In this document: positions 3,259-49,249 of the stretch, piece after piece
Layout: each line of letters opens with the position of its first letter
Numbering within the stretch: position 1 is the first letter of the stretch
Notes under the pieces: generated by a model
Told to the model about the DNA's origin: nothing
Databases searched by the model: none
The model's input: the letters and a program-made list of their open reading frames with translations, nothing else
Program-made: the position numbers and the translations under genes
NCBI RefSeq assembly: GCF_000143415.4
Contig: NW_003314277.1
Coordinates: 2,130,043-2,194,042, forward strand
Direction of reading: 5' to 3'
DNA from: Selaginella moellendorffii
Lineage: Eukaryota > Plantae > Lycopodiophyta
Length of the DNA stretch: 64,000 nt

Positions 3259-3269
3259 GCACCCCCTCC

Positions 3270-24736: not shown

Positions 24737-24995
24737 TCCATTGTGTTTAGGCCGATCTCTACATTCCGTAAAAATGCCAAATGAGCAAATCTAGACACTT
24801 TCCATAATTAGCATTTGGGACAGGTATGAGACTAACAATAAGGGCGTGATAGCGAGGGTGTTTGGAAGAATCGGTAAGCTATCATACTGCATTATCGAGG
24901 GACTAGTCTATACACGCAAGGGTTCTTGCCCAACCAGTGACAAACAGAAAAAAAGAGAACACACAAGCTAGGCCAAGTATGCTTGGCTAAATAGA

Positions 24996-25311
24996 CACCC
25001 TACCCCTCGGGTCGAGCCCAGCGGGAGCAAACTGGACCAGCCAGATGTCAATCAACATGTGGTGTGATTCCCCTAGCCAACCAACAGAGTCGGACCCGAG
25101 ACCCCTCTGATACCAAATGTAAGCTCCTGAGTTTGGACTTCCCGGGAGGTCACCCAGCCCAGTACTATTCAAACCCAAGGACGCTTAACTCCAACTATCC
25201 CAAGACCCTTAACCGATTGGAAAAGGGGGTGCACTCTTGTTCATGGGCCCTTTCCCTCTATATTTGAACCCCATGGATCGTCTCTCGAGTCGTTCCCTTT
25301 GGTTGCTTACA
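24996..25311 (-). mobile_element. Cassandra-type TRIM fragment (5' LTR with 5S rRNA-derived segment, PBS, internal domain)
   Basis: 194-bp LTR 25118-25311 with TGTAAGC/GCTTACA ends. 25190-25135 reads AGTTAAGCGTCCTTGGGTTTGAATAGTACTGGGCTGGGTGACCTCCCGGGAAGTCC (5S A/IE/C box region). PBS TGGTATCAGAG; purine tract at 24996-25008. Confidence 0.88.
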
Positions 25312-27544
25312 CTAATAAAGGGAACTAACAATACCGACCTCCTGCCGTTGTGGCAGTAAGGAAAGAGTGTCCGTAAGGACTGGCCAACAAGTATCTTTCA
25401 ATACCCGAAATCATATTTGCAACACTCTTGAAGTCATCACCTTCAACTAAAGTCTTTGTTTCTCCGACTTGCCAATTCTATTTAGCAAATCACTTAACCA
25501 GCGTAACATCGTTCTTTGCATAAGCATAAAAGTCCTTAACTATTGACTTTTGTTCAAAGCTATCTATTTGAACCCACGAGAATAACCTCCCCAACCTTGA
25601 TAGCATCACCTCATGGCAAACTTTAAGACCACAATTTTGCTGTGTTACTTTAATTTTACGAAATTTTATGAACCATTTACATTTATCTTTTTAGGTACCA
25701 ACCTACCCAAAATTGTCTTTAGGAACATTGAAAGGACTCTATCCCTTAGCTTGCTAAGGCATCTCATTTTGCAAGCTTTCTAATTGTCATATGGTTTAAT
25801 ATAGACAATTCTATACTTTAGACTTTCCATGGCATCACAGTTGTCAGTAGCAATACCTTCGAACACCCACTTGATTCTCTACTTCTAATTTGCATAATCA
25901 AGAGTGGTTATGCTCTTCAACTTCTATGGTTCAATTATATCCTTTTACTACTTATTTTTTGGCTTTACACGTTCCCTTTAGTTATTTTCCTCCTGATTAA
26001 GAGGGTAACTTTGCACTTTCTATCATGCATTAATAAATATTCTTAGGGATGAACCTACTGAATGACCTAAGGAGTGGTTTTTCAATTTGGATATACTCAT
26101 CTTTGTAATCCCACATACCAAAATTAACGTTTTTATTTAGGGGCCTTTCTATGCCTGCTACTATCTATGCTAAAATCCTTTTGGCTTTATCTACTTTGGA
26201 TAGTCAGACATACCCTGTCTTTAGGTTTTGTCAACCTTAGATATTATATAGCACCTTCTATTCATTTTCCTTTAGAAATATAGTCCTTTAGGCTTTATTT
26301 AATGCCCTCATAATACCCAAATACCATCTCTTTAATATTTTTAAGGTGTTTATATATTTTTGTGATGGATTTCCCAAGCAATGAGCATTTCCTATTGATA
26401 TTGATCCATTATACCACAACATAAGCACAACACCCCTTAAGGGATGTATCACCTTCTTCTTATTCAACCAAGAAGTCTTAAAAAGTTAGTTCTAACAAAT
26501 TATTCTAAACTTTTGCTTAGTTTCTTCATAATTCATCATGTCCTACAACTCATTACCAATGCTTTCACACCTTCATTAGTATTTGGTATAAACACATAAG
26601 TCCAACTATATCTTAGATATGCCAACCCCATTTTCATTGGGGTTCCTTTGGCATAGGGTTTTCATGCACCACCAACTTGACCTTAAGACATCATCCTTTG
26701 AGACATTTGGGGTCTCCACCCCACCAGCTTCATAAGTCTACCATCACAACACTTACCACTTGTATTTAGATCTTGCCAAGACTAAAGTAATCGTTTCTCA
26801 TATCAACTATCAATTAGCACTACTCCTTAATGTTCACATACAAGTCTTTGCTGAAGTTGCTTTTTAAAGTCATAGACTTTGTTAATTCAACATCCTTTAA
26901 CGTCCTAGCCTTTTAACTACTTTTGAGATGCCACCACTCTTGAATACAACTTCTTGTATTCATATCCTATTTATAAGGACTATCTTTGCAAGTGTTACTC
27001 TGACACTTGATTATCCTCAGTTTTACATGGGCTATTTTCACCTTATAGAACTATGCTTCTATATGATGAGAACACTAACTCATTTGTTAGATACACTTCT
27101 AACTCCTTAGGTTGTTCTAGCATTTCTTAGAGGTAGCTTTGACCTCCTATGGTCACTGACTCTATCCTCAACTATATAAGGATAATTTTATGACTCCTTT
27201 ATCTTTTAGAAGTTTCTATCATTTGCATGATCCCAACTGTAATTGTCTACTATAACCACATTAGCCAATTTGCTAAATCAAACGCTTATATAAATTACAT
27301 CCTTAACTCTCTAAGGAAAACTTTCTACTATTCCTAAGATCCCAAAATTGTTCCCTTATTGGCCCCTTTCTATCCACCACATTGCCTACATATTTATATA
27401 TGAACTAAAGTGGAGAGGTATGCTCTCTTGACATGCTACTCCTTAAGGATAGGCCCCCTCCTAGAACCTTCTGATGCCAATATAAGTGGTGATATACTTG
27501 ACTACCAATAAGAGTCGGATTAAGGAATAGCTTTGATACTAAAT

Positions 27545-29372
27545 TGTAAGTGACTATATTTTCCATTCTACTTTAGTCACTTAATTATACCTTCAACCAC
27601 TTTGAGATGTGTCACTCATAACCTCTATAAATCATATTCTTGAATTAGGGGCATGTTAAACCCGTAAATGGCATCTATGCCACTTAGTCTTTACAGTTGG
27701 CCTAACTGCTTAACATATCCAATCCTATTACAGACACCCAAAAGTATCACAAACATATCAACCCATTATGCTAAGGCCATGTCTCATTAGTAGTCTAAAA
27801 CCACCCATACCATAGACCCATTTTCCAAAGACTAGGCCATCTATCCATGAGTGGTCACCCCCTGACCACACTTTAGCACCCTTAAAATGCCCAGAGATAT
27901 GAGGGACACCCTTCCCCAATATCCCTCCATCGGTCCTCACCAAGTCTCATTTCGTCCATGGCAATCCTCACCAACACTACTATCATGAATGTGACTTCAA
28001 ATATTGAAAGATACTTATTAGCCAGTTTTTACAGACACTCTCTCCTCACTGCCACGATGGTAGGAGGTTGGTACTGTTAGCTCCCTTTATGGTCTCCACC
28101 CAAGCTAATTGAAAAATTGGTCAGCACATGTGCACTTAGACCAGAAGGGCACTAAGGAAGGAAATCCTAAGTTGTCATTAAATCAAGCAAACTTGACACA
28201 GTGACGAGAAACTCATGTTGTTGGCTTGCACTTGCTAGTGTTGGGAACCCCCATGATAGTGAAATTGGTCCCTCAATATTCTCTAGATGATAACTTATTG
28301 TCTTTGCCAAACACCCTCGTTATTATGCCTTTTGTGTTAGTTTCATTCTGTTATTAGCTCATTATGAAAAGTGTCTAGATTTGTTAATTTGGCATATCTA
28401 TGAAATGTAGAGATTGTCCCAAACACAATGGTGTTGGTCTCGTGTCCAAATTTGCAATCAAGAAATATTCCATATTTAGTAAATTTCAAGCTTGTCCTAA
28501 AGACTAACTTCTGGTACTAAGGGAGGCTTGGGGTGAAAGCCCCAAGGGCAGCCTATGAAGGTTTTAAATGTGTAGTAGGGATAATGGTTGGAATGCATGT
28601 CTAACCACTTGAGACATTAGTTTTGCTCCCGTTGGGTTGTGTCCTTCTTTGTTCTATGTCCAGCTTGGGTCTAAGCCCAAACTTCACACTGCTCTAGTCG
28701 GTGGGGTACCCTCCTCCTCACGTTAGTCCACCAGTATGCCAAAATTGTGCCAAACACCATCTAACACCATTTTGCATGCAAGTGCTAGATATGAGGAGTT
28801 AGTGCTCATAGAATTGTATTAGACCTCTTTTTGTAGTGCAATAGGCTTGGAGTTCGGCTCCAAATTTAGATGCACTACAACCGCCATTGAGTCAAAGTCT
28901 AAAGGCCCGACCACTAAGTCCCATTGACCTTTAGGACTTCCTCACCACGTGACCATGCCCTTGGTCTCTATGCAAGAGGACTCTTTTCCACAATCTAGGA
29001 CTTTGGGATAACATTTCAAAACACCGTGGCCTTACATAAGCCTCGTGGGTACTCTTCCCACCTTCTGCCTTTGGGTGACCTAGCCATGTGGCTAGAGCAA
29101 GGTTCTGATGAGCTACACCAGGTATCTAAGTAGATAATACCACCCACACTTGGATTGAGAGCATCAACCATTCGATCTCCTAGGGGAGCTAGATCTAGCT
29201 CTTGAATACTTCACCAAGTTACCCCACTTATCCACTTGTGTTCACCCTAGCCTTGGACTCCTCAATGGTTATATCATCACCACTACATGGGTATAGCCCT
29301 CTTTAGTCACATTAACCTTTCCTAGCCAAATTGGTTCCACTAGAGTCCTCCCTCTATTATCTTTTTGGAGCT
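27545..29372 (-). repeat. Family A 5' LTR (truncated) with degenerate Met PBS, interrupted by a solo LTR
   Basis: Homologous to 30336-31296; minus strand reads ...CTTACA ATT TAGTATCAAAGCT at 27529-27550. Confidence 0.8.
27981..28879 (+). mobile_element. Solo long LTR (family C, 899 bp) nested in a family A LTR
   Basis: Reverse complement of 22878-25424 without its inserts. Flanks ACTAC and ACCGC are each one transition from the ACTGC seen in uninterrupted family A copies. Confidence 0.85.
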
Positions 29373-29499: not shown

Positions 29500-32449
29500 G
29501 AGTTCTTATGATTGTTTGAAATACTAACATGGCTTGTAATACTATTTGATGAGCAAGTGACTAAAAATAACTTGTTGTGTAACCTTCTTACACTCTAGAT
29601 ATGTCTTTGGCTTAAACTTCAAAATTTCACTACAAGAAAGTGAACTTAAACTTCCAAGAAATAACTTTGAGCATGTTCATCACTCATATTTATAATTATA
29701 ATTCATTTTCAAGCAAACACATTAATATAGTGCATAAGGTCCCCACACTACTTCAACTGCCGTAGCTTTACGCAAAGTCTCAGACCAAGATCATCCAGTA
29801 AGTAAACCTTATAAATATAAGATTGCATTTTACTTCTAGTTTGTCATTTTTTAGCACACACCTAGCACTATCAAGTTTTGGCATGATCAGTGAAAAAAGA
29901 CTATGTGCATGCAACTTTTGTATGATCATCTACATTTGCCACTATAAAATAGTTTTCCATATCATAGACCCAATCTTCAAAACCCTAATAATTCTGCATG
30001 CCTATGAAATTGAGTGGTTTCAAGGGTTTGAACTTTGAAACTCGTGGAATTGAAGGTGATTGCAGAATTTCATCATCCTCAAAACTTGAAGAAGAATCTA
30101 ATTGCTTAAGTTTAGTTAGTTTAGTTGCCTTAACTTTTATTTTCCTCTTCTTGTTCTCCTTCTTCAATTTACAAACTTCTTTTTGATCTCAATGTCTTGA
30201 GCCATATGCTATAATACTACAGCCTTGGGCTCTTCCTCTTTTGACTTAGCATCAACTTTTTCCATAGCATCTCTATCAAAAGTTTCTTCCTCTTGTTTTT
30301 CTTGTCTAGAGGTTTCAGCCTCATCAACATGGTTTTGTAAGTGACTAAATTTTCCATTCTACTTTAGTCACTTAGCCACACCTCCGACCACTTTGAGTCT
30401 CACTCACAACCTCCATAAATCCTATTCCCAACTTGGGGACTTACTAGCCCTGAGAATGGCATCCATGCCATTCAATCATTGCACTTGATCTAAGTGTTCT
30501 ATATGTCTAATCCCATGACTGACACCTAAAAGTGCTATTAATATACCAACCCATTATGCTAAGGCCATGCCCATTCAACTTTATCACATTAGTATTCCAA
30601 CACCACCTACATCACAGTCCCGTCTCTCAAAGATTGGGCCATCCGTCCAAGAGAGATCATCCCAAATCCACTTCTTAGCATCCTTAGAATGCCTGCAGAC
30701 ATGAGGAATAACCTTCCCCAATATCCCTTTTTCAGTCCTCACTAAGTCTTTTTCTATCCATAGTAGTGTTCACCAACACTGCCACTAGGTCAATACCCGC
30801 GGCCTGACCACTAAGTCCCACTGTCCTTTAGGACTTCCTCACCATGTGACTGTATCCTTAGTCATTACACTAAAGGATTGCTCCTTTTTCTTTCCACAGT
30901 CTAGGACTTTGGAATAACATTTTGGAACACTGTAGCCTTACACGAGCCTCATAAGTACTCTCCCCACCTTCCGCATTTAGGTGCTCTAGCCATGGGCTAG
31001 AGTGAGGTTCCATTGAGCCATGCCAGGTATCCAAGTAGGTAGTGTTACCCATGTTTGGATTGGGAGTATTGACCATTCGATCTCTCGGGGGAACTAGAAT
31101 CAACTCTTGAACACTTTACCAAGTTACCCCACTTTTCTGTCCATATTCACTTTAGCTTTGGACTCCTTAGTGGATATATCCTCACCCAACATGTGAACAT
31201 AGCCTTCCTGGGTCACACTGGCCTTTCTTGGCCAAACTGGCTCCACTCGAGTCCAACCACCACAGTCTCCCTACTATACTTTTGGAACCCCTTACATTGC
31301 CCCCCCCTCCCTTCCCCGCTTGGGGACAATCACTTTGGGCTTTCACCTAATAGCCGGTATTAGTATTTGGACTTAGACTCAAACTCAGTCTTGATCTCGG
31401 TCTTGGTTTTGGACTTGGACTCGGTCTTGGTCTCGGTCTCCATCTCAGTTCCATCTTGGACTCCATCTTGTACTCCATTTCAGGTCCATCTCAGACTCCA
31501 TCTCCGGTCCATCTCGAACTCCATCTTGGGTCCATCTCGAACTCCATCTCAAGTTCATCTCGGGTCCATCTCAGACTCCATCTCGGGTCCATCTCGGACT
31601 TTATCTCGAACTTTATCTCGGGTCCATCTCGAACTCCATCTTGGACTCCATCTCAGACTCCATCTCAGATTCCATCTCAAGTCCATCTCGACACTTCCAC
31701 GTGTCATGTGTTGGTCCTATTGTGTCCCTTTTCTAGAGACTCATTTATTGCTTGCTTTGAGCTTGTTCCTCGAGCCCTTCATTGGAGTTCCACTCCCGCT
31801 CTCAACTTTTCAAGTTGAAGCTTTTAGTCTAAACATGTTATGTTTGTTTGGCTTCTGCTTCAACCACTACCATGTGGCACCCTTTTAGCTCCACTTTTAG
31901 GGCTCTGGGATTTGTATCTCACAAGTTCCTTTTTGCCATCTCACCAGCTCCATGCATGCTTTTATCGATAACTTAACATGCATATAACATTCTTACTGAA
32001 TGGTGCAATTCAACTAATTCTACATAAGTCACTTTGGATCTACTAAAAAAGTCTTTGCATATATGTAACTAGAGTAAAAAACTCCAACAAAAGCTAGATA
32101 ATAATCGCTAAGACAATTTTTTTGATACCAAATGTAATGCTCTTAAATTTAGAGTTGAACACCAAGTCCATTACACTATAAAACAAAGGTCCAATACACA
32201 CTTAATATCCCCTATAAGCATCATCTCTCCACATTTAGTTTTTATATGCAAAATAGTATCAAATGGAGTCTGGCACAATTTCAATATACCGGTGGTCTAA
32301 TGAGAGGAGGAAAGTACCCCACTAACTAGAGAAGCATAAAGTTTAGGATTAAACCCAAGCTAAATGCAAAACAAGGAACGACATAGCCCAATAGGAGCCA
32401 AACTAATGTCTCATATGGTTAGCCATATAATCTAATCACTATTCCTACT
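29500..32449 (-). pseudogene. Decayed gag with Met PBS and truncated family C-like 5' LTR (32133-32449), interrupted by solo LTR A
   Basis: Translation KPLNFIG..FEDWVYDMENYFIVANVDDHTKVA..FFTDHAKTW. PBS TGGTATCA at 32130-32123. Confidence 0.65.
30336..31923 (-). mobile_element. Solo long LTR of family A (1588 bp) with internal PPT and TG start at 31296-31317
   Basis: TG...CA ends, degenerate TSD GGTTT/AGTTC, TCCATCTCRRAC 12-mer array at about 31440-31690. Confidence 0.8.
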
Positions 32450-32796
32450 TGGATCAATGCATTACACAATATCATGGAAGGCTATGTTATCAAAGTCATC
32501 TATACTTGCCCATATGTCATTTCCTACTAACAAATTAAGGATTGCTTCAATGTAGTGTGTACCAAATTATTTCCTACTAGAAGAGCCAGTTGTCTTGGCA
32601 TCAATAGATTTTCTAGACGAGGATTATGTATATATTAAAAAAAGATATTAAATATAATATATAAAATATAAATACCTGTTCCTAAATATAAATTGAATAT
32701 TTTATATTTAAAATGTTTCATCTATAAAAGTGTTAATTAAAACTGTTTTTAAAATATATTTATAAATATAGAGTTCAAATACATTAAGTTTTTTCA

Positions 32797-33723
32797 ATGA
32801 GATGCATAAATTTTATTATAACTATTTATTCATGTTTTTATATAGCTTATGCTCCAGAAGAATATCATTATGAAATTTTTGGAGTTAATGGAGCAATTCC
32901 AAAACAAATAAATATGGATGTAATAGTTTATTTTTTTAATAATTTCATAGAGATATCATTGCCCTCAAATAGAAATACACCAGAAAGTTCTACATTTCAT
33001 ACATCCTATATTGACATGCTTTCAGATCATACAACTTTAATTATAGATTTATTCCTTATTGTTATATCTGCTGGTAATAGTTGCCCAGTAAACAATAATG
33101 GAATTCGTCAAGTTGATAATAATGATGCTACAGGTTTAATATTAAGAGTTGCTAATCAAGTTTATCTTTCTTTTCGAAATGAAAGAGCATCATATTTTAT
33201 AAGTATTATTGTTCAACATGACATTGGTATTTTTGCCATAGTGTATATGATACGTGGATATCAGCTTGAAATAACTCCTCTGTATAGTATGATTTATTCA
33301 TTTCCCAATCCATATAAAATTTGTAACTTTTTTAAAAGTACATTACTTAGTGGATATAAAAGTTTGTTTATAGCCACACTTCATGCTGGTGAATTTTTAA
33401 CACATCTTTATAAAGCATATATATTTTTAGTACAGCAAGATTGTAATGCTGTTTATTACTACAAAAATATAGTTTTATGGAATACTAAAACATATGGAAT
33501 AAGTTTTGATTGTAAATTTAGATTACAAGAAGATGGAAATTTTGTTTTATATTCAGCATTTGATTTGAAACCCTTATATGCAACTAAAACTTATTGTAAA
33601 AATTTTAAATGTGTAAAACCATCAATGTTAATTTTACAGTTAGATTGTAATTTAGTTTTATATGAAGATGGAAAACCTTCTATAAGCATGTGGTCAACTA
33701 AAACAATATGTTATAGCTATTAA
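32797..33723 (+). CDS. Putative secreted protein: signal peptide, unknown ~165-aa domain, C-terminal GNA/bulb-type mannose-binding lectin
   Basis: Intact 308-aa ATG-TAA ORF. Three QxDxNxVxY sites (QQDCNAVYY, QEDGNFVLY, QLDCNLVLY), hydrophobic N-terminus ending AYA, TATAAATA at 32761. Confidence 0.82.
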   Translation: MRCINFIITIYSCFYIAYAPEEYHYEIFGVNGAIPKQINMDVIVYFFNNFIEISLPSNRNTPESSTFHTSYIDMLSDHTTLIIDLFLIVISAGNSCPVNNNGIRQVDNNDATGLILRVANQVYLSFRNERASYFISIIVQHDIGIFAIVYMIRGYQLEITPLYSMIYSFPNPYKICNFFKSTLLSGYKSLFIATLHAGEFLTHLYKAYIFLVQQDCNAVYYYKNIVLWNTKTYGISFDCKFRLQEDGNFVLYSAFDLKPLYATKTYCKNFKCVKPSMLILQLDCNLVLYEDGKPSISMWSTKTICYSY

Positions 33724-35586
33724 GTTAATTAAATATTGTTTATATCTAATTTTGATATTAAACTAGTTAATTTCAAAACTTCCTTATAGAATATAGAGAA
33801 GACTTCTTTATTCAGATATCTATATGAATTTTTGGTTTGCTTAAGCAAACCTGTAGGGGGACTAGGATGGTAGTGAATATACCTAAAATATGCTTGAATA
33901 TTTTAGGATATTCTACCATTTAACGGTTGTTATTAATTTAGAATAATCTTGTTTTTATAATTTATAAACTTTCTTAAACCTTTTCTAGTATTTTTTTTAT
34001 AAACTTTATTTGATCAATTAGATTAATAAGTAAGAATAACACTACTATTAAGAAAACCAAATGTTGCTACATGCAATGCGTAGCAATTTATTTTTTATAT
34101 TCCTGTAAGTCAAAGAGACTGAATATTCTCTTCATATTACCTAGAACATGAAATTTTTATTATAAAAAATCTGCTAGGCCGTGATAACTCTAGTGAAACA
34201 GCACTTCAATCACACCATTAGGTGTCAAACAGCAAAGGGCTGCATGACAAGTATATAGGCCTTAACTTGGTCACACACATAAAAACCATGTAACACTTCT
34301 CTTTCTAAGTTTTAAGAAGTAAATTGTGGCTTGCTCAAGTTGTTTGGTGGAGAGTACTATAGCATAAAAAGAGGTTATATAGGTTTGTTGTGTGCTTGGC
34401 TTCAGCCTATAAATTCCATATAAATTTACTCAAAACAAACAAGGCTGCATTTGGGCATTCCTCCCATTCTCCACCACATTCTATTAGAGCATTAGTCCTT
34501 TAGTTTAGGGTTCTTTATTTTTCTTTGCCATTTTTCTTGAGAGTGAGTATTAATGTTCTTGTTTCTTCATAAGTTGTGAAGCTTGACTTCTCTTCACAAT
34601 AGTATTAGAGATACAAGTTAGAATTTTAGTTTATTTTATTTTTTTAATGAGTAATGCCTTACATGCTAGGACAAGATGGCATCCCCCAGAGAAATGGAGT
34701 AGTTCAATAGAACAAATTTCCTCACCTAGAAAGAATGTGCTCAGTTCTGGTTCATGAGATTTGGATTCAAAAAATGCCTACTAAAGGATGATCACATTGA
34801 TCAATACAATAGGTGGCAAGATTTTGATGCAAAAGTGAATGGAGTTTTAGGAAAAGGACTCAATCTTCAATAGAGAGTCTAGTATAGAGTCCATGCATCT
34901 GGTATAAGAAAATCAATTCTTTTTAATTTCCCTTGGATTCCAAAAAACATATGAAGACATTAAAATACTCTTCAAAAAAATGTTTTTATTGTCATAGGCC
35001 TATATGATCCTCCAATTTCACCATTTCAATCTTTTCTAAGTTTTATCGATAAATCTACTTCAAATCTATCTTCTAACAATAAAGAACTCTTTATTGAAAT
35101 CAAATGAAAGTTAGGAGCTAAGTTTGATATGCTAGATTTTAGCTATAGTGAACATTGTTAATCTTATACACTATGGTGAAATATTTATAGAATAACCAAC
35201 CCTTAGGCATGAGTGCCATATGTAGAATACAAGTTCTAGGTGGACAAAGGGACAAAGTTAAACTCTTAAGTATACAACTAAGGTGTGAAGGTAAAACATA
35301 ATGAAGGTCACAATCATCTTCTAGAGTTATGTCTTTTCTTTTTCTCTTTTTTGAATCTTTGCAACTTGATCACTCTAGCCATATACTAGACTGAAGAATC
35401 AATACTAGATTACATATCAGATAGAGGCTGCAAGGTTCTCACACTATCAATGCCTAGTATGATCCATCCTAGTTGTCTGTTAGGGTCATTGCCCCAAGAT
35501 TCCTCTAGAGAGAGAGAGACAAGCAATGCAAGATATTTCTTGCCATTGTGGGCATATGCCACAATCATTGTGTTCCACTAGCAAGG

Positions 35587-38500
35587 TGTAGCACACGTGG
35601 TTTTTACACTTTATCCTATAGTGATTTACCATAATATAACATTACGAAACAAAACTTAAACCCTCTATATGTGCCACATGTTATATGCCACATATCACAT
35701 GCTATGTGTCCATAGGACAGTGGTGTGGAACCCAAGGTTTAGGGCCTTGAGCCACTGAACGAAGGAACAGTGCCAAACTCCCAAGCATGAAGCCAAGGAG
35801 CAACAAAACTAAACCATGGAGCAATTCCTAAGCGTACAGCCCAAGGAGCAAAGGGACAGGAGCACAGAATAACTTGGAATAGTCCTAGAGTATCCAGCAT
35901 CCCAATGCCAAGACCAGCACGCAAAACAGAGCCAAACAGAGTCTAGCGCTATTTCGGTATACCAGTGGCCTAACGTGAGGATATGGGTACTCCACCAGCT
36001 AGCATGGTGTGGAACTTGGGCTTAGACCCAAGCCAGACATAGAACAAAAACAAGCACGCAAGCGGGAGTTAGACTATACCTCAGGTTGGTCAGCCATGCT
36101 CAACCTACCTACCCACTATCCCTACTATACATTTCGAACCCCCCCCCCTCCCCCCCCGAGAAACACACACTCCCTAAGCCTCCCTTAGTATCAGGAGTTA
36201 GTTTCTAAGATAGACTTGAAACTTACTAAATATGGAATGTTTTTAGATTGCAAATTTGGACACGGGACGAACACCATTGTGTTTAAGACAATCTCTACAT
36301 TCTGTAAATGTGCCAAATGAGCAAATCTAAACACTTTCCATAAATAGCATTTGAGACTGAAATGAGACTAACACAAAGGGCATGATAGCAAGGGTGTTTA
36401 GCAGACACAATAAGCTATCATTTAGCGAATATTGAGGGACCAATCTCAATATTGTGAGGGTTCTTGATACTAGCAAGTGCAAGCCAATGACACAAGTTTC
36501 TCAAACCAAATCGAGTATGCTCAGCAAGAAACACATAGGGTTCCTACCTTATGTTTATCCAATCCAAGTGCATGTTTATTGACCAATTTCTCAACTAGCT
36601 CAAGTGGGAATTAATAACGAGTCCAGCAATACTGACCTCCTACCATCGTGGCAGTAAAAAAAGAGTGTCCGTAAGGACTGGCTGACAGATAACTTTCGAT
36701 ACCCAAAGTCACATTTGCGACACTCTCCCCCCTTAGGGAAAATTGACATCCTCGTCGATGCATACTTAAGTCTAGACCACTGCTAAGGAAACAACTCTAT
36801 TAAAAGTTCACGATGATCACACTATGTAAGAACTTGAAGGAGTTAGAATAACCTCTTTGTCTAATGCAAATGTGCTACCAACTCAGACACCCTCTGGGCG
36901 TCACCGACAAGGAAATGACTAACAGAGTTAGCCACCCTTGCTGCTCTGGGTGTCACCCAGCTTACAAAAGTGTGATATGCTTAAGACATAGAGAGAGAAG
37001 CTAGAGGCCCCAACCCTCATAAACAAAGAAACCAAACCTGTCGGTAAGGTTTAGATAGACTACTGTAAATAGGCAGTTAGAGTTGTTTACATGGTCATGC
37101 CCTTTCAACAAAATAAGGAATATCGACAAAGAGGCGGGTGATGTGACCAGTCGACAGTAGCTACCCTATAACTAAAAATTTCACTATGCACACGAAGTGC
37201 CAAAGCCAATCTACCTATACTGGCCCAAACTCAAAGATCAATAGATGGACAATATCAATGTCATAGACAATGATATCTTAGAGACTTAATTATCAGTGAA
37301 TAAATCTTAAAACTCAAGTTGCGTAAGCAAATATGAGCAACATTCTACTAATGTCACAAACCCAAGAGACCAATCCAGAGAAAACCACAAAGAACATATG
37401 GTAATGCAAAAAACCATAAACCATCAAAGAAAATAACTAACTATCATGAAGATCATCTATCATCCCATTAATGAAGAGATGCATAATCATCGTTGAAGAA
37501 AGAATCCACCATCTCCAAGAATAGCGAATCATTTTATATCAACAATAATCAAGCAAAACCCTTTTGACAAGGATAATCAACTATCCTAGATGATAGTCAA
37601 TCATCACCCATGATTTCTAGATGCAAAAATCAACTTTCACATTCGAAAGCTATGAGCCCAAATGCCTTCCCTCAACACTCCTAAAAAATGGAAACATGAG
37701 CATGAAAACTCAAAGAACCAAAAGCTCAAAAAAGTTTATAGCCAAGTCTTGCCTAACAATGATCACAAGTCTTGCATGAACTAATTTCAATGCTAAAGAA
37801 AAAATCATGGTACAACCCACGACATCTTTTTCAACACATCTATAAGCTAAACTTCATAATGCCAAAGCTAATGAAGAGCATATCTGCATCAATCCAAAAG
37901 CTAAGCACAACAGAGCTATGCTCAATAGGTGATCACTAAACGATCCTCCATGAATCCATTTATATCAATACGTAACTCACTTGATAACAAGCACAAGAAG
38001 AACCATCAATGATCAATATATTTCAACTCAAATCTAATAAGGATTCAAATATTCCAATATTAATCACTAACTCTTCCTCTTGTAAACCTAGTATAGTTCA
38101 CGATTAAATCACTTTTCAAGGAAAAGCCAAAGCTCAACCACAACTAAACAATCTCGTCTAGAACACAACTAACTCAACTTGCCATTTAGTTCATTGAACG
38201 TCATAGTTGCTAACTAGCAAATGCACGAATGCTAATAACACAAAGTTAAAACCAATTCATCAACACTATTTTTATCGAGAGTAATGAAACTCAATATCAA
38301 TCTTTTAGAAAGATATCTCATCTCACTTGAATCTCAACATCAACAATATCAATGATAAGGCATCACTTCAATGCCATTAACACTAGAACAAAACTAAAAG
38401 AAAGCAAGAGTGAATCACCACTCAAAGCTTTTCAGCAATTAAGCTAACTAAAGTTGAAAATACTTTAATCAATATCTGAGACTAGTTCTTCAAGAATACT

Positions 38501-41500
38501 CAGTTTTTAGATAACACTTCATCAAGGAGTGATTCACCACGTCCAAGACTCAATGAAATCTAACACTACGAACTAAATGCAACCAATTGTTATTGACAAA
38601 GATAGAGTTAACATGCCAACATGGAAAACCCATGCAAGCCACAACATGATCCTCTGCAACACCATCTGGTAAAGCAAGTCCATCACTGCTAAATTATTAT
38701 CAAGTGAAGCAAGTGTCACAGTCTTCGACAAAATCTACAAGCAAGCAACAATCACTTTTCAATTTGCCTTTCACAAGACCCAAACACTAAACTTACGTCA
38801 TTGAGTCATACACTTGTCCAATATGAACATAATACCGTAGATACAAGATAAAGGTTCATGGACAAACACAAACTAAATGACCACTCGAATCTAACTCAAC
38901 TGCAATAAGCTCACCAACATGTTTAGTCAATAGTTCTGAGCATGCTTTGAAGAGGCTAGCTATGCATAACTAACATTTAGTCGAAACTAAAGTGAAGACC
39001 ATGAGATAGACTCATATCGATACACAACCTCCATTTAGACAAAGCTATAGTATGGGTACTAACATCTTAACCCCAAACAACTAAGTTGGACATCACCATC
39101 TTCAACCAAGGCATAGGGCCACCAAGACCAAGTTTAGATCAGTGAGAGTTCACTACTCTCATAGAGTCTAATGAAATGCAAAGTGCAACTTAACACCAAG
39201 CAGAACATTATAAAAGAAAAGCACAAGGGTCACCCTTCTTAGAAAAGCGCAATAGCCACTTTTCTACACCAACTCTAGACTCTATCCAACTCAATTGCTT
39301 TAGCCCCAAAAGTCAGCATCCTTTTCGGGTCGCATCATACAAATTACATACTAAGGTTTAAGTTAACCAAAATCAACTCCAACCCCTTCATTAGTTTGTA
39401 CTGGCTTATGAAAACAGAATGGTTTTTAGACAAAATGATCAATAGATCAACCATTGGATAAGTCTAAGAAAATTTGTGGAAAAATTTCCCATCCTAGAGA
39501 AAGAATGACTCTCAGTCTAGGAATACAAACTTTCAAGACTTAACCAACTCCTACCTACTACATCATATAGGTTCGCCTCAACACAAATTCTCATGATCCA
39601 ACAATATGCTTAAGCATCGAACATCTTTGCCCATATAACCAACATCCATAACCGACATCTGCAAAATGCAAAGTGAACATCCAAGGCTTGATCACGAAGA
39701 CTATATTTCGGATATCCACATTGTACTAACACTTTTTTTCAACCACCTTCAAGATCCAATGTGAAGCCAAAACACTAACAAGAAAAATGACATGGAAAAT
39801 CAAGCTCTAAGGAAAATTCCTCCATCACTCAAAATATCAATGCCACTTCCACTAACACAAGTGCTAGTGATGTCAATGTTTCAACTACACACCTTCTCCA
39901 TTCAACAATCTACTCCAAATGTTAACAAATCAACCAGCAAATCATAGCAAGTGAATGCTATAACTCTTTCCAACACTTTAATGGGAACTCCCCAGGAAAT
40001 AAGGTACCAACTTAAGCTTAGCATAATGGACCACCATTGAGAATTCAGTTAAAGCTACTACAATGCTACTATATATAAGTAGATTAGCTTCACCATCAAC
40101 CACTTTGGGGTTGATCATCATTGAACCAAACAACTTCGTAAACATATTACTCATTATCACATGGATATGATATAAAAATTACAATGACTTGATCATCAAT
40201 CGAGCAACACCACAAACAACACCCATGTCACTACTTCAAAAATTTATTTAACTATCAAATGCTAATTTGATTCGACAAAATACAACATAAATGCCACACC
40301 CCACCGATAGAGATTTACAACACTTAACACCACTAACTTTTGTTCACAACACAGATAAGTTCATGCCACTCTCTTTCTAACCAAACTCAAAACTAATCCA
40401 ACACTGAGCTACTCAAGGAGGAATAACAAGGTTCCCTAGAAAAGAAGTGAGCATTGTAACCTAAGTTTTCAATAGCAAGCCTAGACAAAATGGTATAGCA
40501 CTTCACCACTATCCATTCCATGACTCACCACTTATAAAACCATTATTTCCAACATGCATCAAGATAGGGACTCTTGATTGCATAATGTGAACACGAGCAA
40601 TGAGTTACACCTCATTGTGAATCATCTCTTCAAAAAGAGAAAATAATTTACATGTTTGATCCTTTGTCCCTGGTAACTCTCTTTTTGGTCTCATCTTTGA
40701 CCAAACCTCAAGCTTACGTTCGCATTGCCTTCAATCCAACCCAAAAAAAGTTTATGAGAGAGCACAGCAATAATTACTTGAACTAATAGACTTATCCCTA
40801 TAATCTTGATTGATCCACTTATAATCATGTCTAGGAAGGATCCACTAGTGCCGTGCTAAACAGCTACGGACCAGCCTATTTGCCACTCATAACAAACCCA
40901 GGGAAGGTTTACTTTCACCCATGGTACTTGGAACAACTTATGGAACCACCAATAAACTAACATTAATCTTGCCAACTCAAAGTGTAACCTTGAGTTGCTA
41001 ATGTGCCTCACTCATAAGCCCAAGTGCAAACTCGTGTAAAACGGAACATCTCAAATCCATCCTATGAGCTCAAGAGCAAACTCACATTATTATGGTACAA
41101 AAAGGTAACTAAATCCATACCCAAGGAACGATTGCAAAACCTTTGCACCCAAATATATACCCACTCGAATCATTGTTTTCATTTCTATATATACAACGAG
41201 ACCAGTTGCCAAATCTCATTGGATAATACTCGCTGAAACGTATCTTCTAATACCAAATGTAGCGCACGTGGTTTTTACCTTTTATCCTATGGTGATTTAC
41301 CATAGGATAACATCACGAAGCAGAACCTAAACCCTCCATGTGCCACTTGTTATATGCCATGTGTCACATGCCATGTGTCCATAGGACAGTGGTGTGGAAT
41401 TTGAGGTTCAGGGCCTTGGGCCATTGAACAAAGGAACGGTGCCAAACTCCCAATCATAAAGCCAAGGAGCAATAGAACCGAACCACAAAGCAACTCCCAA

Positions 41501-41812
41501 ACGTATAGCCCAAGGAGCGAAGGGATAGGAGCACAGAACGACTTGGAACAGTCCTAGAGCATCCAACATCCCAATGCCAGGACCAACACACAAAACGGAG
41601 CCAAACGGAGTCTGGCGCTATTTCGGCATACCGGTGGCCTAATGTGAGGATATGGGTACTCCACCAACTAACATGGTGTGGAACTTGGGCTTAGACTCAA
41701 GTCGGACGAAGAACAAGGACAGACATGCAAGCGAGAGTTAGACTATACCTCAGCTTGGTCAGCCATGCCTGACCTACCCACTATCCTTACTATACATTTG
41801 AAACCCCCTACA
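35587..41812 (-). mobile_element. Non-autonomous (LARD-like) LTR element, family D, with short 5' LTR and extended 3' LTR
   Basis: 5' LTR 41258-41812 (TG..CA) with PBS TGGTATTAGAAG. 3' copy of the core at 35587 to about 36140 plus a module to 36722, then PPT AAGGGGGGAGAG (36723-36734). 4.5-kb interior without long ORFs. No TSD found. Confidence 0.8.
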
Positions 41813-43124
41813 CTGTAAAAGTTAATATTTTCTCTTGGCCTTCTTTTTCTTGGATGTGTTCTTTACGGAGTTTGAGAATGCATTGTTACTGTTATGTCTT
41901 TTATGATAACGATCTTGGTGGTTTCTATATTATATCATAATTTATTGGATGATTAGTTTTTAATTAAAATACTTTACTGTTCGAGTCTAAAAATTATTAA
42001 TTAAATCTTTAAGATATCATTATATTCTAACTTTGATATTATCCATTATATTGATCTTGAACATTTGTGCCAATATAGAAAAGCTAGATTCTACACTTCA
42101 TGTTCATAAAAATATCTCTAATCATGGGACATAAACTACTCACATACTCTCACTGAGGTCAAGAGGTGAACTAGAGAATAGAGAAGAATCAAACACTGCT
42201 TACTAGCCAGAGAGAAACCTCAATTGAGGAGGAAACCCTAGTGCTGGGAAACTTTGCCACTATTTCCCTTGCAAGGGCAGAGGCAAATTAAGGTTAAAAG
42301 CTTCATAGCTACATGGTATAGTAAAATTTTTCTCTCTTCTAAGGTCTCCCATTAAACAACATGCTGTTTCACTTTGTCTTTACTTACATGTCTAGTGATT
42401 TGAATTTTGTTTTTTCTGCCACAACGACCTCTCCCATCTGTTGCCAATGCACCCTCTGCTTGCCCACCCACCCGCCTGCCTCCCTATGTACCTCACCTGC
42501 CCATAGGGTGTGCCCTATTTGTTTTCCACATGCTAAATTTTTTTCCACGTGGCAAGTGGCCACACTTAGCTAAATTTTATGATGCTAATTGATAAAAAAG
42601 CTCACAGTTTTTCTATGATAAAAAAATCAATTAAACTTTATATTAATTTAAGAAAATCATTCAGGATCCACTCTGGCTTGATGACATGCAAGAACTCCAT
42701 TAAAAAGGGACTTTTTTTTGTGTAAATGATTTAGATTAAAATTTTTCTAAATCAAATGAAACTATAGCTGCTATTGTGTATATATTACACAAGGATGTAA
42801 ATATGGTGAGAGGGGATTTTTGACATTTTTCTAACAAAAATAATGATTATAGAGATTTGAAAAAACCTAAAAACACAAAAAAAAAATTTATTATATTGAT
42901 AACAAAATATAATTACACATAGGTATTGGTATAAATATAGAAAACAAGATGCTTATAAAACTTCCACCACACTTGTTGAGTCTACACCAAAGTCATGACT
43001 TGAAAATAAACCAAGTCAAAGTTCCAACAAGTGGGGCTACCTTTGCAAGTATTTAGTCAAACAATTTTACAAATGGTTTGATTATGTGTAGATTATATAT
43101 TCTCATAGAAAGTAAATTCCTTGT

Positions 43125-46100
43125 TGTTGCAAATGTGATTACGGGTATCAAAATTTACCTATCAATGAGTCCTTTCAAATATTATTTCCTTCCTATCACA
43201 ACAGCAAAAGGTTGGTATTACTGAACCCTTTATCAATCTCTGCCAAAGCTAGTCAAGAAACTGGTCATCACATGTGCACTTAGACCAAAAGGGCACTAAA
43301 GAAAGAAATCCTAAGTTGTCATTAATTAAGCATACTTCGCACAATGATGAGAAACTCATATTGTTAGCTTGCACTTACTAGTGTTAGGAACCTTTGCAAT
43401 ATTGAGCTTGGTCCTTTAATACTTACTAGATGATAGATTACCATATGCACCAAGACACTCTCGCTATTATGCCCTATGTGTTGGTCCTATTCAGTCCTAA
43501 TGAATATTTATGGAAAGTGTCTAGATCTACTAATTAGGCATATTTACAAAATGTAGAGATTGTCTTGATCATAATGGTGTTGGTCTTATGTCCAAATTCA
43601 CAATCTAGTGCCATTTTATATTTAATAAATTTTTATGATTGTCCCAGAGATTAACTTCTAGGACTGGGGTGAAAACCCAAGTATACGTTCCTCAAGAGGG
43701 GAGGGGGAGGGGGGTTGTGGGGGGTTCCAAATATATAGTAGGCATAGTGGGTAAGTCAAGTATGGTTGACCAACTTAAGGCATAGTCTAAATCTTGCTTG
43801 TGTGATTATCCTTGTTCTACATTTAACTTGGGTCTAAGCCCAAGTTCCATACCATGCTAATTGGTAAAGTAACCATATCCTTATGTTAAGCCACTAGTAT
43901 GTTAAAATAACACCAAACTTTTTTTGCCCCATTTTACATACTAGTATTAACATTGAGATATTAAATGCCCTAGGACTATTCTAAGTCGCTCCATACTCCT
44001 ATCTATTCATTCCTTGGGTTGTATGCTCAAGAGTCATTCTACACTTCACTTCCTTCACTTCTAAACTCTATACTCAAGAGTTTAGCTCCCTTCATTTAGT
44101 GACCCAAGCTCTGAAACTTGGGTTCCACTCCACTGCCTTGGACACGAGTGGCATGTGGTAGGCATGTGAAGAGTTAGGTTCCACTCTGCTGCCCTTGGGC
44201 ACATGGTCAAGGGTTTAAGTTTTGCTCTGTGGCTATTCTATTGTAAATCACTATAAAATAAAGTGTGAAAACCACATATGCTATATTTAGTATTAGAAGA
44301 TAAGTCTCAACGAGTGCTATCTATTGAGATTGGGAAACTAATCTTATTGCATATGCAAAGATGAAAACGATGATTCAAATGGGTTCATAATTGGGTGCTA
44401 TGACTTTGCATTTGTTCCTTAAATATGGACTCTGGTTACCTTTTTGTACTATATTGTGTGAGCTTGCACTTGGGCTCATAAGATGGATTGATATATACCA
44501 TTTACATGAGTTTGCACTTAGGCTCGTGAATGAGATGCATTAGCAACTTAAGATTACACTTTGAGTTAGCAAAATGTCAACCTATCAATGGTTACCATGA
44601 GTTGTTCCATGTTACTATGGGTAAAGTAAACCTTCATGAGTGGCAAATAGGCTAGTTTATAACTGTTTAGCATAGCACTAATGTATCTAACCTAGGCATG
44701 GTTATAAGTGGATCAATCAAAGCTATGGGGATTAGTCTATTGGTTCAAGTAATCATTGTTGTGCTCTCTCATAAACTTTTCTTGGATTAGACTAAAAAAA
44801 ATGTGAATACAAGCTTAAAGTTTAGTCAAAATGAGACAGAAAAAAAGTTATCTAGGATGAAGGGTCAAATATATATATCATCTTCTCTTCTTTAAGAGGT
44901 GATTTAGCAATAAAGTGTGATCTCATTGCTCATGTTCACATTATTGAATCAAAAATCTCTATTTTGATTTATGTTAGTTATAATGGTCTTACAAGTAATG
45001 AATCATGAGATGGATGGCAGTGAAGTGCTAAACCATTTTTTCTAAGCTTATTATTGAAGAATTAGGTTACAATGCTTAATTTTTTTCTGAGGAACTTTGT
45101 TATTGCTCCTTGAGTAACTTAGTGTTGGATTATTTTTAAGTTTAGTCGAATAGAAAGTGGCATGAGCTTGTCTGTGTTGTGAACAAAAGTTAGTGGTGTT
45201 AGGTGTTATAAATTTATTAGTGGGATGTGGTATTATGTTGCATTTTGTCGAATAGAGCTAACACTTGATATTCATAAATCTTTGTAATAGTGACATAGGT
45301 GTTGCTTATCATGTTACTCAATTGATGATCAAGTCATTGTAATATTTATATTATATCCATATAGTCGTGAGTAATGTATTTATGAAGTTACTTGGTCAAA
45401 TAATAATCAACCCCAAAGTGGTTGATGGAGAAGTTAGTTTACTTGCAAGTAGTAGTATTGAAGTAACTTTAATTTAGTTCTCAATAGTAATCTATGTTAT
45501 GCTAAGCTTATGTTGATACCTTGGTTCCTTAAGAGTTGTTTATTGAGTTTTGAGAAGATTATAGCATTTATTTGTTATAACTTGTTAGTGAATTTATTAG
45601 CACTTGGAGTAGATTATTGGATGGAGAAAGTATGTAGTTAAGATATTGGCATTGCTAACACTTGTGTTGATAAAAGTGATATTATTATATCGAGTGATGA
45701 GAAGTTGTCCTTGAAGCTTGATTTTCATCTCATTTTTCTTGTTAATGTTTTGGCTTCACATTTGATCTTGAAGGTGATTGAAAAAAAGTATTAATGCAAT
45801 GTGAATATTTGAAGATGTGGTCTTTGCAATCAAGTTTTTGGGTATTCATTAGTATTTATATAACTGCGTGTCAAAGATTACTAACCTTCAGAATATACAA
45901 AAAATGTTCTTGGATATCATAAATATGGGCATGATATTTAGTGCTTAAGCATGTTGTTGGGTCATAAGACCTTATCTTGAAGTAAATTTATGTGAAGCTG
46001 TAAGTAGGAGGAAGTTGGTTAAGTCTTGAGAATTTGCATTTCTAGACTGAGAGTCAGTCTTTTTCTAGGATGAAAAGTTTTCACAAATGTTTTTAGGCTT

Positions 46101-47905
46101 TTCCAATGGCTAATTTGTTGATCATTTTTCCTAAAAATTATTCCATTTTCGTCCGCCAGTATATAAGCAACTAAAGAGAACGACTTAAGAGACTATTCAT
46201 GGAGTTATATTAATATCAGAGCGGTTCACGCGTCCGACTTTATTGGTTATCTAAGGGAATCACACTACATATTAATTGACATCTAGTAAGTCCAATTTAC
46301 TCTAGCTAGGCTTAATCCAAGGGGTAGAATGTCAAAAGAGCGGGGCTCTTAGAAGAGTTGCAGCTCTTAACTTCCATTTATGAGGGCGTGAACTTGCAAG
46401 GTAGCGTGATGGATTGTAAACAAAAAAAAATAAAACAACTTGAGAGACAATTCATGGGATTACACCATACAAACTAGTTAAGGGGTTGGAGTTGACTTTG
46501 GTTAACTCAAACTTTAATAAGTAGTTTGTATGATATGGCCCAAAAGGGATGTTATTTTTTGGGGCTAAAGCAATTGAATTGAAAAAAGTCTAGAGTTGGT
46601 GTAGAAAAGTGGTCATTGCACTTTTCTGAAAAAGTGACCCTTGTACCTTTTTTTTATACATTATACTTAGTGGCAAATTGCATCTTACATTTCATTAAAC
46701 TCTATTAAAATAGTGATCTTTTATTGATTTTGACTTAATCTTAGTAACTCTATGCCTTAATTGAGGATAGTGATGTCCAACTTAATTGTTTGTGATTAAG
46801 ATATTAGTACCTATACTATAGCTTTATCCATTAGGAGGTTGTGTATCATATGAGTCCATCTTATAATCTTCACTTTGGTTTTTGTTAGGTGTTGATCATC
46901 TATAACTAACCTATTTAGTTATGCTTAGAGTTATTAACTAAACATGTTAGTGAGATTATTGCACTAGGATTGGATTCAGGTAGTCATTTATTCTTACTTG
47001 TCCATATTCCTATATAGTGTACCTTAAATGTTACCTTTTCTATTGGACAAATATATGACATAATGATGTGAGTGTAGCATTTGGGTCTCATGAAGGCAAG
47101 TTGAAGAGTGATTAGTTTCTTTGTAACTAATGATTACTTATAAACTTCGTTAAGGATTATTGACACTTGCTTCACTCAATAATGATTTAGCAGTGATGAG
47201 TTCACTTTACCAGATGGTGATTGTGTTTTTGGGCTTTCATGGTTTTTCCATGTAACATTTTAAACTTCAGTAATGTTAATATCAAGGCATCATCAATTCA
47301 ATGCTATCAACACTATAACAAAACTATAAAAAAGCAAAAGTGAATCATCACTCAAAACTTTTTAGCATCTAAGCTAGCCAAGGTTGAAGATACTTTTTTT
47401 TTTAGTATCAAGACCAATCTTTCAAGAATACTCAGTTATATATAACACCTTATCTAAGGACACGTCCAAGATTCAATGAAATCCAATACTATGGAATAAA
47501 CGCAACTAGATAATATTGACTGAGATAAAACTAAAATTAAATAAGATGAGATGTCATTTTGTTTCTCAATGAAGATGATGTTGATAGTTTAGCCATACCT
47601 TTATGTCATTAGCATTCATGCATTTGTTATGTAATAATTATATTCGCATTCAAACAAGTTGAGTGGCAAGTTAAGTTAGTTGTGTTCGAGATATGATTAT
47701 TTAATAAGGGTTGAGCTGCTTTGCAAGAGAAAGAATTAGTGATCAATATTAAAGTTATTAATTCTTTATTGGATTTAATTGAGGATTATATCAATTATTG
47801 ATCTTTTTATGCTTGTTATGAAGTGAGTTATTTCTTGTTGTGGAAGATGGATTCATTGAGGATTATTTGATGATCACTTATTGAGCATAGCTTCATTATA
47901 CTTAG
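43125..47905 (+). mobile_element. Second, truncated family D element with a long 5' LTR (43125-44285)
   Basis: Reverse-complement homolog of 36722-35587, then PBS TAGTATTAGAAG and an interior matching 41257 down to about 37900. Confidence 0.8.
46162..46464 (+). mobile_element. Candidate mini-TRIM (~303 bp, 48/50-bp LTRs)
   Basis: Absent from the paralogous interior near 39400. Diverged direct repeats 46162-46209 and 46415-46464 (TGTAAAC...ATTACA); PBS-like TAATATCAGAGC right after the left repeat. Confidence 0.6.
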
Positions 47906-49249
47906 AACAAACAAATAGCTTGTCTAGTATATTTTCTAGCTCCCTTTTCATCTTTTTTACTTATGGATTGGGCAGCAATGCTAATCCCCTAGTAGAGCTC
48001 AACTCCTAACACTCTCTACATACCAATAAATCTACCAGTAAATTGAAACTTTAGTCACATTTTTTCATGAAATCCTTATGTCAATAATGCCAAAGCTGCT
48101 ATTGATGTGCCCCTGCTTGAAATGCAAGGGCAGAGAGGTTCCCTAGAGCACCTTTTACCACCATTAGAATCCCTCTGGAAAGGGAAGCTGGATGTGTCAA
48201 TAAAGAATGTTATTTATAAGTGTGCATTTTACCTAGTGGACTACTACTATCTATGCCTTTATGGTGTTAGGATTTTTATGCCATAATATAGCAACAATTG
48301 CATCAACTAGTGGGTCATCAAGCAATTTATATGTGTTAATGAGTGCATTGGAACAGACGGACTCATAGATGGATCCACTTCAAGAGGCTCCAAAGCAGCT
48401 GAATAGAAGTAAGGGAAATTGCACAATTGAAGACATGCTCTAGTCGAGGATTTTGGAACCCTAATGGATTTGAACTATACTTCTGAGAGCTTTAAGGATG
48501 ATATGCTCTAGTTGATTTTTGACTCTTCCAAGTGATAAAACATGGCATCACTCATTGCAAAACTAAAGGATTGGAATGCAAAGCTCAATGGATAAAAAAC
48601 TCCATCAACATAGAAGCAGTTCAAATCATTATATAAGAGGTTGGGCTTGCCAATGCTTCAACTTTATGCAGTATGCTACCACAAGATTGCCAAGAAAAAA
48701 AAAGGATAAACAAAAGGTACTTGTCATCTGAACCCCCCTTACCTTTTCCTGTTATCTAGATGAGCAAAGAAAGTTTATGTATATGATATCAACTCATTTG
48801 ATGTTTACATGATGTTTATTACAAGAGTTCAAACATGCCAAATTTGCTTGACAACTAGAAAAGAAAGTGTCACCTTTCTGTACCAAGCTGTGGCTCCTCA
48901 ACTCAAATTGCACACTTAGTCAAGTACAGTGTGCATTAATGATCTTTAGCATAAGGATGAAATTTTTGGCATGGTATGCCATGTGACCAGTTTCCAAAAT
49001 GAATAACTCAATATTGGCATGGGATGAAGTGGCGAGAATTTTAGGATTTCCTAGATTCTGCAAAGGAGTTTCTTCTACCAATTCATTGCTCAATATGCAA
49101 GTGTTATTACCAACTGTGGCATCAACCTGATCCAACAACCATGTTAACAGGGAACTTTGATATCTGGTGCAATTAGTTACAGATATTTCACACAATTTTT
49201 ATAATTATACAAGAAGGGGTGGCCAGTCCTTAGATGAGGTAGAGAGGAC

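Follow-up and report, generated by a model that had tools for sequence, protein, structure and literature searches.

Long and short 5' terminal repeats in an abundant retrotransposon family of Selaginella moellendorffii and the clustering of breakpoints at an internal G-rich tract

Plus-strand DNA of retroelements can be started at a second RNase-H-resistant purine tract, such as polypurine tract 2 (PPT2) of Ty1 or the central polypurine tract (PPT) of human immunodeficiency virus 1 (HIV-1). These two priming sites are cited in PMC2829016 and PMC4393142. The plant Sireviruses (Ty1/copia) possess multiple PPTs upstream of the 3' long terminal repeat (LTR) (Bousios et al. 2010, PMC2829016); the possible transfer of plus strands primed at such upstream sites is discussed in the same paper, and work on retroviruses has addressed the strand transfer of plus strands that begin internally (Bowman, Pathak and Hu 1996, cited in PMC2829016). 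Quadruplex-forming sequences have also been described in plant LTRs (PMC3902901, PMC5838962). Here we analyze a family of LTR retrotransposons, called family D, in a 64,000-nucleotide stretch of the lycophyte Selaginella moellendorffii (RefSeq assembly GCF_000143415.4, contig NW_003314277.1, positions 2,130,043 to 2,194,042, forward strand; hereafter the window). The LTR of this family occurs in a long form, made up of an upstream module, an internal G-rich purine tract and a core, and in a short form reduced to the core, and the breakpoints separating core from module are clustered at the 3' edge of the tract.

Element A, on the minus strand at 35587 to 41812, displays both forms in a single copy. 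Its 5' LTR (555 bp, from 41812 down to 41258) consists of the core only; it begins TGTAGGGGGTTTCAAATGTATAGTA, with the TG at 41812 and TGTAGGGGG as its start, and terminates GCGCTACA, after which comes the primer binding site (PBS) TTTGGTATTAGAAG (PBS region 41238 to 41257), a decayed match to TGGTATCAGAGC, which we take to be of the initiator tRNA-Met type. Beyond the interior (36735 to 41237) lies PPT1, AAGGGGGGAGAG (36734 to 36723), directly abutting the TGTCGC start of a long 3' LTR (35587 to 36722). This LTR opens with TGTCGCAAATGTGAC at 36722 and comprises, in order, a module of about 565 bp (36722 down to 36158), a 19-nt G tract (36157 to 36139) and a core (36143 down to 35587) ending in GTGCTACA. 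The two cores are 86.1% identical, with 68 transitions and 9 transversions per 555 nt (Kimura two-parameter distance, 0.16), and the homology of the 5' LTR ends at 41812, where the flank is unrelated AT-rich DNA. The initial annotation of this DNA had read the long LTR as a module starting with TGTCGC or TGTTGC followed by a G-rich tract and a core, and had placed the end of A's 5' LTR at the internal TG, with a long 3' LTR behind a PPT at the other end. Direct reading and self-comparison reproduced this anatomy, the three-part LTR being found both at the 3' end of A and in the neighboring element B.

A hidden, decayed module upstream of either of the two short 5' LTRs (that of A and that of a second copy, F, described below) was considered and ruled out by two methods. 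No module trace was found by nhmmer in the 690 nt beyond 41812, and for the same DNA a transition-tolerant alignment with shuffles yielded z scores of -1.0 to +0.5, against 135 for a true-pair control. The flanks of A, TACAG and CCTTG, form no 5-bp target site duplication (TSD), as had been remarked previously; four of the five positions differ, two of them by transversion. At the transversion rate of 1.6% per site, two such changes among five positions have a p value of about 0.003, and because transversions are this rare, the absence of a TSD is robust and not attributable to decay. We looked for a templated insertion at the 41812 junction and found none. As a separate observation on this copy, the 3' LTR (36139 to 36147) lacks the TGTA kept in the 5' LTR (41804 to 41812), reading GGGGGGGGGG rather than TGTAGGGGG. 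This amounts to two T-to-G changes in 4 nt and, because transversions affect only 1.6% of sites in the pair, suggests slippage or conversion within the G run, not point mutation.

Element B, on the plus strand, is a sibling of A with a long 5' LTR (43125 to 44285). It begins with TGTTGCAAATGTGA at 43125 and contains the module (43125 to 43693), a 21-nt purine tract (43694 to 43714) that together with an overlapping G-quadruplex (G4) motif extends to 43724, and a core that starts with the TG at 43716 and ends in GCTATA at 44285. The PBS, TTTAGTATTAGAAG, and an interior traced to about 47905 follow (44286 to 47905), colinear with A from 41257 down to 37901; the PBS is of the same type in both copies, and the interiors are about 75% identical. 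The earlier description of B, with a long 5' LTR, the tract at 43694 to 43714, the TG at 43716 and the same PBS and interior as A, is thus borne out. No 3' LTR of B was found within the window. The idea that the LTR of B is really the 3' LTR of a tandem upstream element was ruled out, given that the sequences upstream of the long-LTR starts of A, B and a third copy, D, share no homology.

The status of the outer boundary is established by two solo LTRs of the long form. Solo LTR C (27976 to 28884, plus strand; LTR proper, 27981 to 28879) contains both module and core, is nested in an LTR of a second family, family E, and is flanked by the TSD ACTAC/ACCGC; an uninterrupted E paralog at 20140 to 20155 preserves the empty site, with ACTGC once. 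The first 15 bases of C are decayed and deviate from TGTTGCAAATGTGAC by transitions only. Solo LTR D (22873 to 25429, minus strand; LTR proper, from 25424 down to 22878), a single copy that shares its letter with the family, begins TGTTGCAAATATGA, terminates GCGTTACA and is framed by the perfect TSD AAGAG/AAGAG. TGTYGC marks the start of homology in all four copies (A, B, C and D), and the DNA upstream of this start is unlike in A (interior), B (AT-rich spacer) and D. Because of the TSD-bounded solos and the unrelated upstream DNA, the outer boundary is a proven integration end, PPT1 is a working PPT, the module lies within the LTR and the long form is a transposition unit. The ends of the long form read TGTCGCA or TGTTGCA and TGCTACA, which fits a 7-nt terminal inverted repeat (TGTTGCA/TGCTACA). 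In the window the module never occurs without the core, and because it lies inside the TSDs of C and D, it is neither the LTR of an independent element, a possibility that the initial annotation had entertained, nor a mere piece of interior. Members of the family carry the features of LTR retrotransposons, namely, terminal repeats of the form TG...CA, a PBS (TTTGGTATTAGAAG in A, TTTAGTATTAGAAG in B and TTTGGTATCAAAA in F), a PPT (AAGGGGGGAGAG) and 5-bp TSDs (solos C and D). That the true LTR of the family is the long form (0.9 to 1.16 kb, TGTYGCA...TGCTACA) is one component of an overall explanation, set out below, that as a whole we advance tentatively.

Solo LTR D also bears a breakpoint at the inner boundary. 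In place of about 120 nt just upstream of its core TG, it contains a stretch of gypsy pol of 1530 bp (23207 to 24736) that is 99.8% identical to 17570 to 19099, 5.6 kb away, which is part of a longer decayed gypsy interior; the LTR sequence resumes as CTA followed by TGGGGGGTTCC, 3 nt before the core TG. The near identity of the two pol pieces stands amid repeats that are otherwise 70 to 86% alike, and the duplicate could represent recent gene conversion, filler DNA of break repair or mis-assembly. A breakpoint enclosed by TSDs in this way cannot result from priming, and unless it is a mis-assembly, it shows that the LTR is broken here by a process other than priming, which points to site-specific instability at the tract.

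The second short 5' LTR, F (32113 to 32468, minus strand), belongs to the C/D subfamily and likewise consists of the core only, ending in CATTACA at 32133, followed by the PBS TTTGGTATCAAAA and an A-like leader. Its homology is secure from 32455, about 10 nt into the core, with a possible TG(TG) start at 32468, and its left boundary is accordingly defined only to about 12 nt. Neither nhmmer nor the transition-tolerant alignment detected a module upstream of F. That F and D make up the LTR pair of a single element was ruled out by D's own perfect TSD. Altogether, the window holds two short and one long 5' LTR and two long solo LTRs, the short copies being distributed over both subfamilies and both adjacent to a PBS. 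The three independent breakpoints (0 in A, -3 in D and 0 to +12 in F) occupy a stretch of about 16 nt in an LTR of 900 to 1160 nt, and in all three, the DNA 3' of the tract is kept, whereas the tract and the DNA upstream of it are lost. Such clustering is far beyond chance.

The sequence at the inner boundary is itself distinctive. Both strands of the 64 kb contain just five G-rich purine tracts of at least 14 nt, three of which are the LTR-internal tract, and the four canonical G4 motifs (four runs of at least three G, loops of 1 to 7 nt) found on both strands are all located at the tract. They occupy the same mid-LTR position in two LTR families (36139 to 36157 in the 3' LTR of A and 43698 to 43724 in the 5' LTR of B; 15642 to 15663 and 31300 to 31317 in the family E copies E1 and E4); no canonical G4 motif was found in C, D or F. 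The tract is followed by TG after 1 to 3 nt in B (with TGTGGGGGG at 43716), E1 and E4, and the family motif TGTRGGGG is present in the 5' LTR of A and in B, E1 and E4. Two purine tracts each precede an attachment-type TG end, PPT1 before TGTCGC at 36722 and the inner tract before the TG at 43716. To this extent, the proposal of two usable PPT and attachment (att) sites in the initial annotation is partly supported, with the outer one proven as an integration end by the TSDs of C and D, but use of the inner one for priming and integration is unproven; 5-bp TSDs, anticipated at both boundaries, accompany the outer one in these solos and are wanting at the inner one, where A has none.

The tract is embedded in a block of about 100 nt, consisting of some 50 nt that end in a GGTGAAAGCCCAAAG-like sequence, the G tract and then TGTRGGGGGTTCCAAA(T/A)GTATAGTAGGGA, which is the sole similarity between the LTRs of families D and E and lies inside the repeat in both. 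The motif TATAGTAGGG, 19 to 28 nt into the core, can be likened to plant RNA polymerase I start sites, for which a Brassica motif, TATATAAGGGG, has been described (PMC4691072); the likeness is one of motif only, the window containing no rDNA for comparison. The block is probably a promoter region and the module probably the distal (upstream) part of U3. If the block is a promoter, a short LTR has been stripped of all sequence upstream of about -20, and crippling is then more likely than switching; we found no evidence for the built-in promoter switch that had been proposed. Stretches of family E, whose LTR carries the block in mid-repeat position, lie at 15642 to 16695 (plus strand) and at 19710 to 21232, 27547 to 29372 and 30336 to 31923 (all minus strand). 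The block itself is found in the LTR copy E1 (15642 to 15700, plus strand), as the G tract plus TGTAGGGGTTCCAAAAGTATAGTAGGGA, and a second time in E4 (from 31350 down to 31255, minus strand). E4 is possibly a long solo LTR with the TSD GAACT/AAACC, nested in the leader of F, its boundaries being uncertain. A further family E copy, E3, is a 5' LTR with the PBS ATTTAGTATCAAAGC that is devoid of the roughly 600-bp upstream part of E; with E2, it possibly forms an LTR pair with the candidate TSD GGTAG/GGTAC, again with uncertain boundaries. If they are a pair, E3 and E2 may repeat the short-5', long-3' pattern of A.

Family D is extremely abundant. Public contigs aligned to A gave 41,000 to 83,000 pieces per run at a likeness of at least 80%, and their differences are overwhelmingly transitions. 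The LTR end at 41258 behaves as a genome-wide terminus, with 71 contigs of unlike continuation in X2 (among the sites listed), and the contig alignment of one relative stops exactly at 41812. Among the six loose-end sites listed per run, of about 8,800, positions 36143, 36722 and 41812 do not appear, an absence that is uninformative. The profile hidden Markov models for module and core were built from the copies in the window and run on the window. Pattern scans with a conserved core 22- to 26-mer and the block motif returned no hit in viral contigs and none in metagenome contigs, and a word search at the protein level, based on the open antisense frame across the start of the core, gave no candidate.

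The interior of the family appears devoid of coding capacity. No open reading frame (ORF) of at least 100 aa occurs across 35500 to 48500, each frame contains more than 100 stops, on both strands, a Pfam search with the ten longest open pieces of the interior retrieved no family, and tblastn with the window's intact gypsy polyprotein gave no match. The interior is probably noncoding, as in large retrotransposon derivatives (LARDs), or fully decayed. The gypsy probe came from a younger gypsy-type element at 2871 to 8446, with LTRs of about 390 bp (2871 to 3258 and 8085 to 8446) that are 93% identical and an open frame of 1279 aa on the minus strand (3270 to 7109); a related pol remnant lies at 56062 to 58182. 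Elements A and B, which lie head to head, are separated by an AT-rich, low-copy spacer (41813 to 43124) that contains only one interior-like piece, of about 130 bp (41997 to 42130, plus strand), located 185 bp past the 5' boundary of A and about 78% identical, in inverted orientation, to the A interior at 37190 to 37320 (minus strand; nhmmer E = 9e-5); it could be the filler of an old repair event. Inverting the DNA between the facing LTRs of A and B cannot take away a module, and this possibility was dismissed by reasoning only. Between F and A, a very AT-rich island (GC, 0.27 to 0.36) carries an intact ATG-initiated ORF of 308 aa (32797 to 33723, plus strand), and an exact look-up of its product in a public gene index gave no match.

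On balance, we lean toward the view that the short 5' LTRs of A and F originated by tract-associated breakage and deletion in preference to regular use of a second PPT/att pair, although the preference is slight and the view itself tentative. Family D would then be an old, very abundant and apparently noncoding LARD-type LTR retrotransposon with an LTR of three parts, namely, a variable module that would correspond to the distal U3, the block of about 100 nt with its potentially quadruplex-forming G-rich tract and then TGTRGGGGGTTCCAAATGTATAGTAGGG, and a core that would hold the proximal promoter and R-U5. In A and F, the short 5' LTR would be a U3-less derivative, with the left ends of both clustered at the 3' edge of the tract, arising through either a break after insertion or a blocked or truncated cDNA end that was joined by host repair instead of integrase. 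The anatomy of the copies, the TSD-bounded long form, the clustering and A's missing TSD are observed, whereas we infer the mechanism of truncation and the promoter role of the block. Tract-linked breakage accounts for the three breakpoints, their one-sidedness, the lack of a TSD around A and the filler in D. A number of points weigh against it. Both clean module-less copies are PBS-adjacent 5' LTRs and all of the solos are long, as priming from the inner tract predicts. The boundary of A falls exactly on the TG of the family TGTR motif, for which a random flank has a chance of about 1%, and under breakage this coincidence to the base is partly luck. The loss in A is large, at least 590 bp, and the C/D subfamily is without a strong G4 motif at the breakpoint of D, which weakens the case for fragility in D and F. 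Inter-element recombination, a common event in abundant families, could instead account for the missing TSD of A, and the 99.8% identical insert of D could be due to gene conversion or an assembly artefact. Finally, the sample of boundaries is that of this 64-kb window.

The strongest competitor, which we consider possible if somewhat doubtful, is that the inner G-rich tract serves as a second PPT, with plus-strand strong-stop DNA started at the tract giving a 5' LTR that begins at the inner TG and with integrase inserting this short-5', long-3' element. The same RNA would allow either form in each cycle, and the 3' end would always keep PPT1, module, tract and core. Element A has exactly the predicted architecture, down to the TGTAG at the start of its 5' LTR, which pairs with the CTACA at its end, and F, PBS-adjacent and from the other subfamily, is also module-less, with a start no more than about 12 nt from the TG. 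The presence of both forms in both subfamilies argues for a recurrent process, and clean short forms are confined to 5' LTRs. In biochemical terms the model is reasonable: the tract resembles PPT1 in composition, with a TG 1 to 3 nt behind it in B, E1 and E4, and plant Sireviruses set a precedent for additional PPTs close to the 3' LTR (PMC2829016). Yet no short form has a TSD, and in A its absence is robust, so that priming from the tract would have to be supplemented by a further event such as inter-element recombination. The boundary of F is fuzzy, the breakpoint at -3 inside the TSD-bounded LTR of D needs another cause, and a core-only solo LTR is absent from the window. Moreover, the tract is part of a promoter-like block common to a second family, so its conservation need not reflect priming, and a primer nearer the end should finish strong-stop synthesis first and thereby make long forms rare, yet four long copies of the integration type are present. 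In a fuller version of the idea, a natural and highly successful non-autonomous family would have two sites, separated by about 590 bp, that both function in plus-strand priming and attachment; each cycle could then yield a full or a U3-less 5' LTR, the G-rich tract of a captured promoter block acting as the inner primer. This version, too, strikes us as possible but rather unlikely.

The other explanations are much weaker. Unrelated chance truncations of the 5' LTRs of A and F and of the interior of D, coinciding in position by accident, would suit copies that are all old and decayed (14 to 31% divergence) and a region that is a nest of rearranged elements in which A is without a TSD. They are nevertheless improbable: three breakpoints in about 16 nt of an LTR of about 1 kb have a joint chance on the order of 1e-5 to 1e-4 under uniform breakage, and the boundary of A matches the family TG to the base. 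It is more improbable still that the real LTR is the core alone and that the module merely closes the interior at its 3' end, B, C and D then being leftovers of tandem or recombinant elements. Of the four LTRs that adjoin a PBS in the window, three (A, F and, in the sister family, E3) are without the upstream module, and the tract plus TG resembles a classic PPT/LTR junction; however, the 5-bp TSDs of C and D enclose module plus core, the common TGTYGC homology start in A, B, C and D has unrelated DNA upstream of it, and in contig depth the module resembles the LTR and not the interior, where depth is lower, a measure that is not rankable per bin and serves as a weak hint only. At the bottom of the scale, we place an assembly artefact, with the 41812 junction and the 1.5-kb duplicate in D both being mis-joins. 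Such an origin would explain why 1530 bp are 99.8% identical at two places 5.6 kb apart amid old repeats, but the LTR pair and interior of A are colinear and coherent, and public-run contigs cover the whole A stretch, one alignment ending at 41812, evidence that is weak in that the runs may derive from the assembly's own sample.

Set against the described systems, family D resembles the Sireviruses, in which extra purine tracts akin to the terminal PPT also lie no more than a few hundred bases from the LTR junction. In Sireviruses, a TG attachment site is missing behind the upstream PPTs, and alternative LTR ends are not reported (PMC2829016), whereas both tracts of family D stand before a TG. 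The outer boundary is proven as an integration end, the inner one forms the left end of two 5' LTRs, and the inner tract lies within a proven LTR. Family D further departs from the Sirevirus type of multiple PPT in that it has no copia coding sequence and its tracts are alike in composition but not identical. PPT2 of Ty1 and the central PPT of HIV-1, unlike the tract in family D, are situated in pol and yield a plus-strand discontinuity or flap with no change in the LTR boundary. Should priming from the inner tract be true, the LTR boundary would be a choice made in each cycle and not a fixed property, which would bear on LTR-based dating and annotation tools that assume equal LTRs and would show how U3 regions grow or are shed; in this family, the kinetic-competition rule that retroviral vectors yielded for plus-strand transfer could also be tested in a natural setting.

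Tract-linked breakage, the explanation that we slightly prefer, has its nearest counterpart in the G4-linked one-sided deletions that have reportedly emerged from work on dog-1/FANCJ and polymerase theta in Caenorhabditis elegans. As in these deletions, the cases in family D involve loss of the tract and of DNA 5' of it, a break at the 3' edge of the tract and, once, filler. The link to G4 structures is by analogy and is qualified by the loss of at least 590 bp in A, which exceeds typical G4 deletions, and by the merely weak G4 motif in the subfamily of D. If this explanation is true, the tens of thousands of copies of the family would document, in a natural setting, one-sided deletions at a promoter tract rich in G. 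In other respects, and with the caveat that only two old copies were compared and that a decayed autonomous element is possible, the family is ordinary, old and LARD-like, with breakpoints whose clustering is unexplained, and it shares with LARDs the TG...CA LTRs of about 1 kb, the PBS of the tRNA-Met type, the PPT, the 5-bp TSD, the ORF-less interior of about 4.5 kb and a very high copy number.

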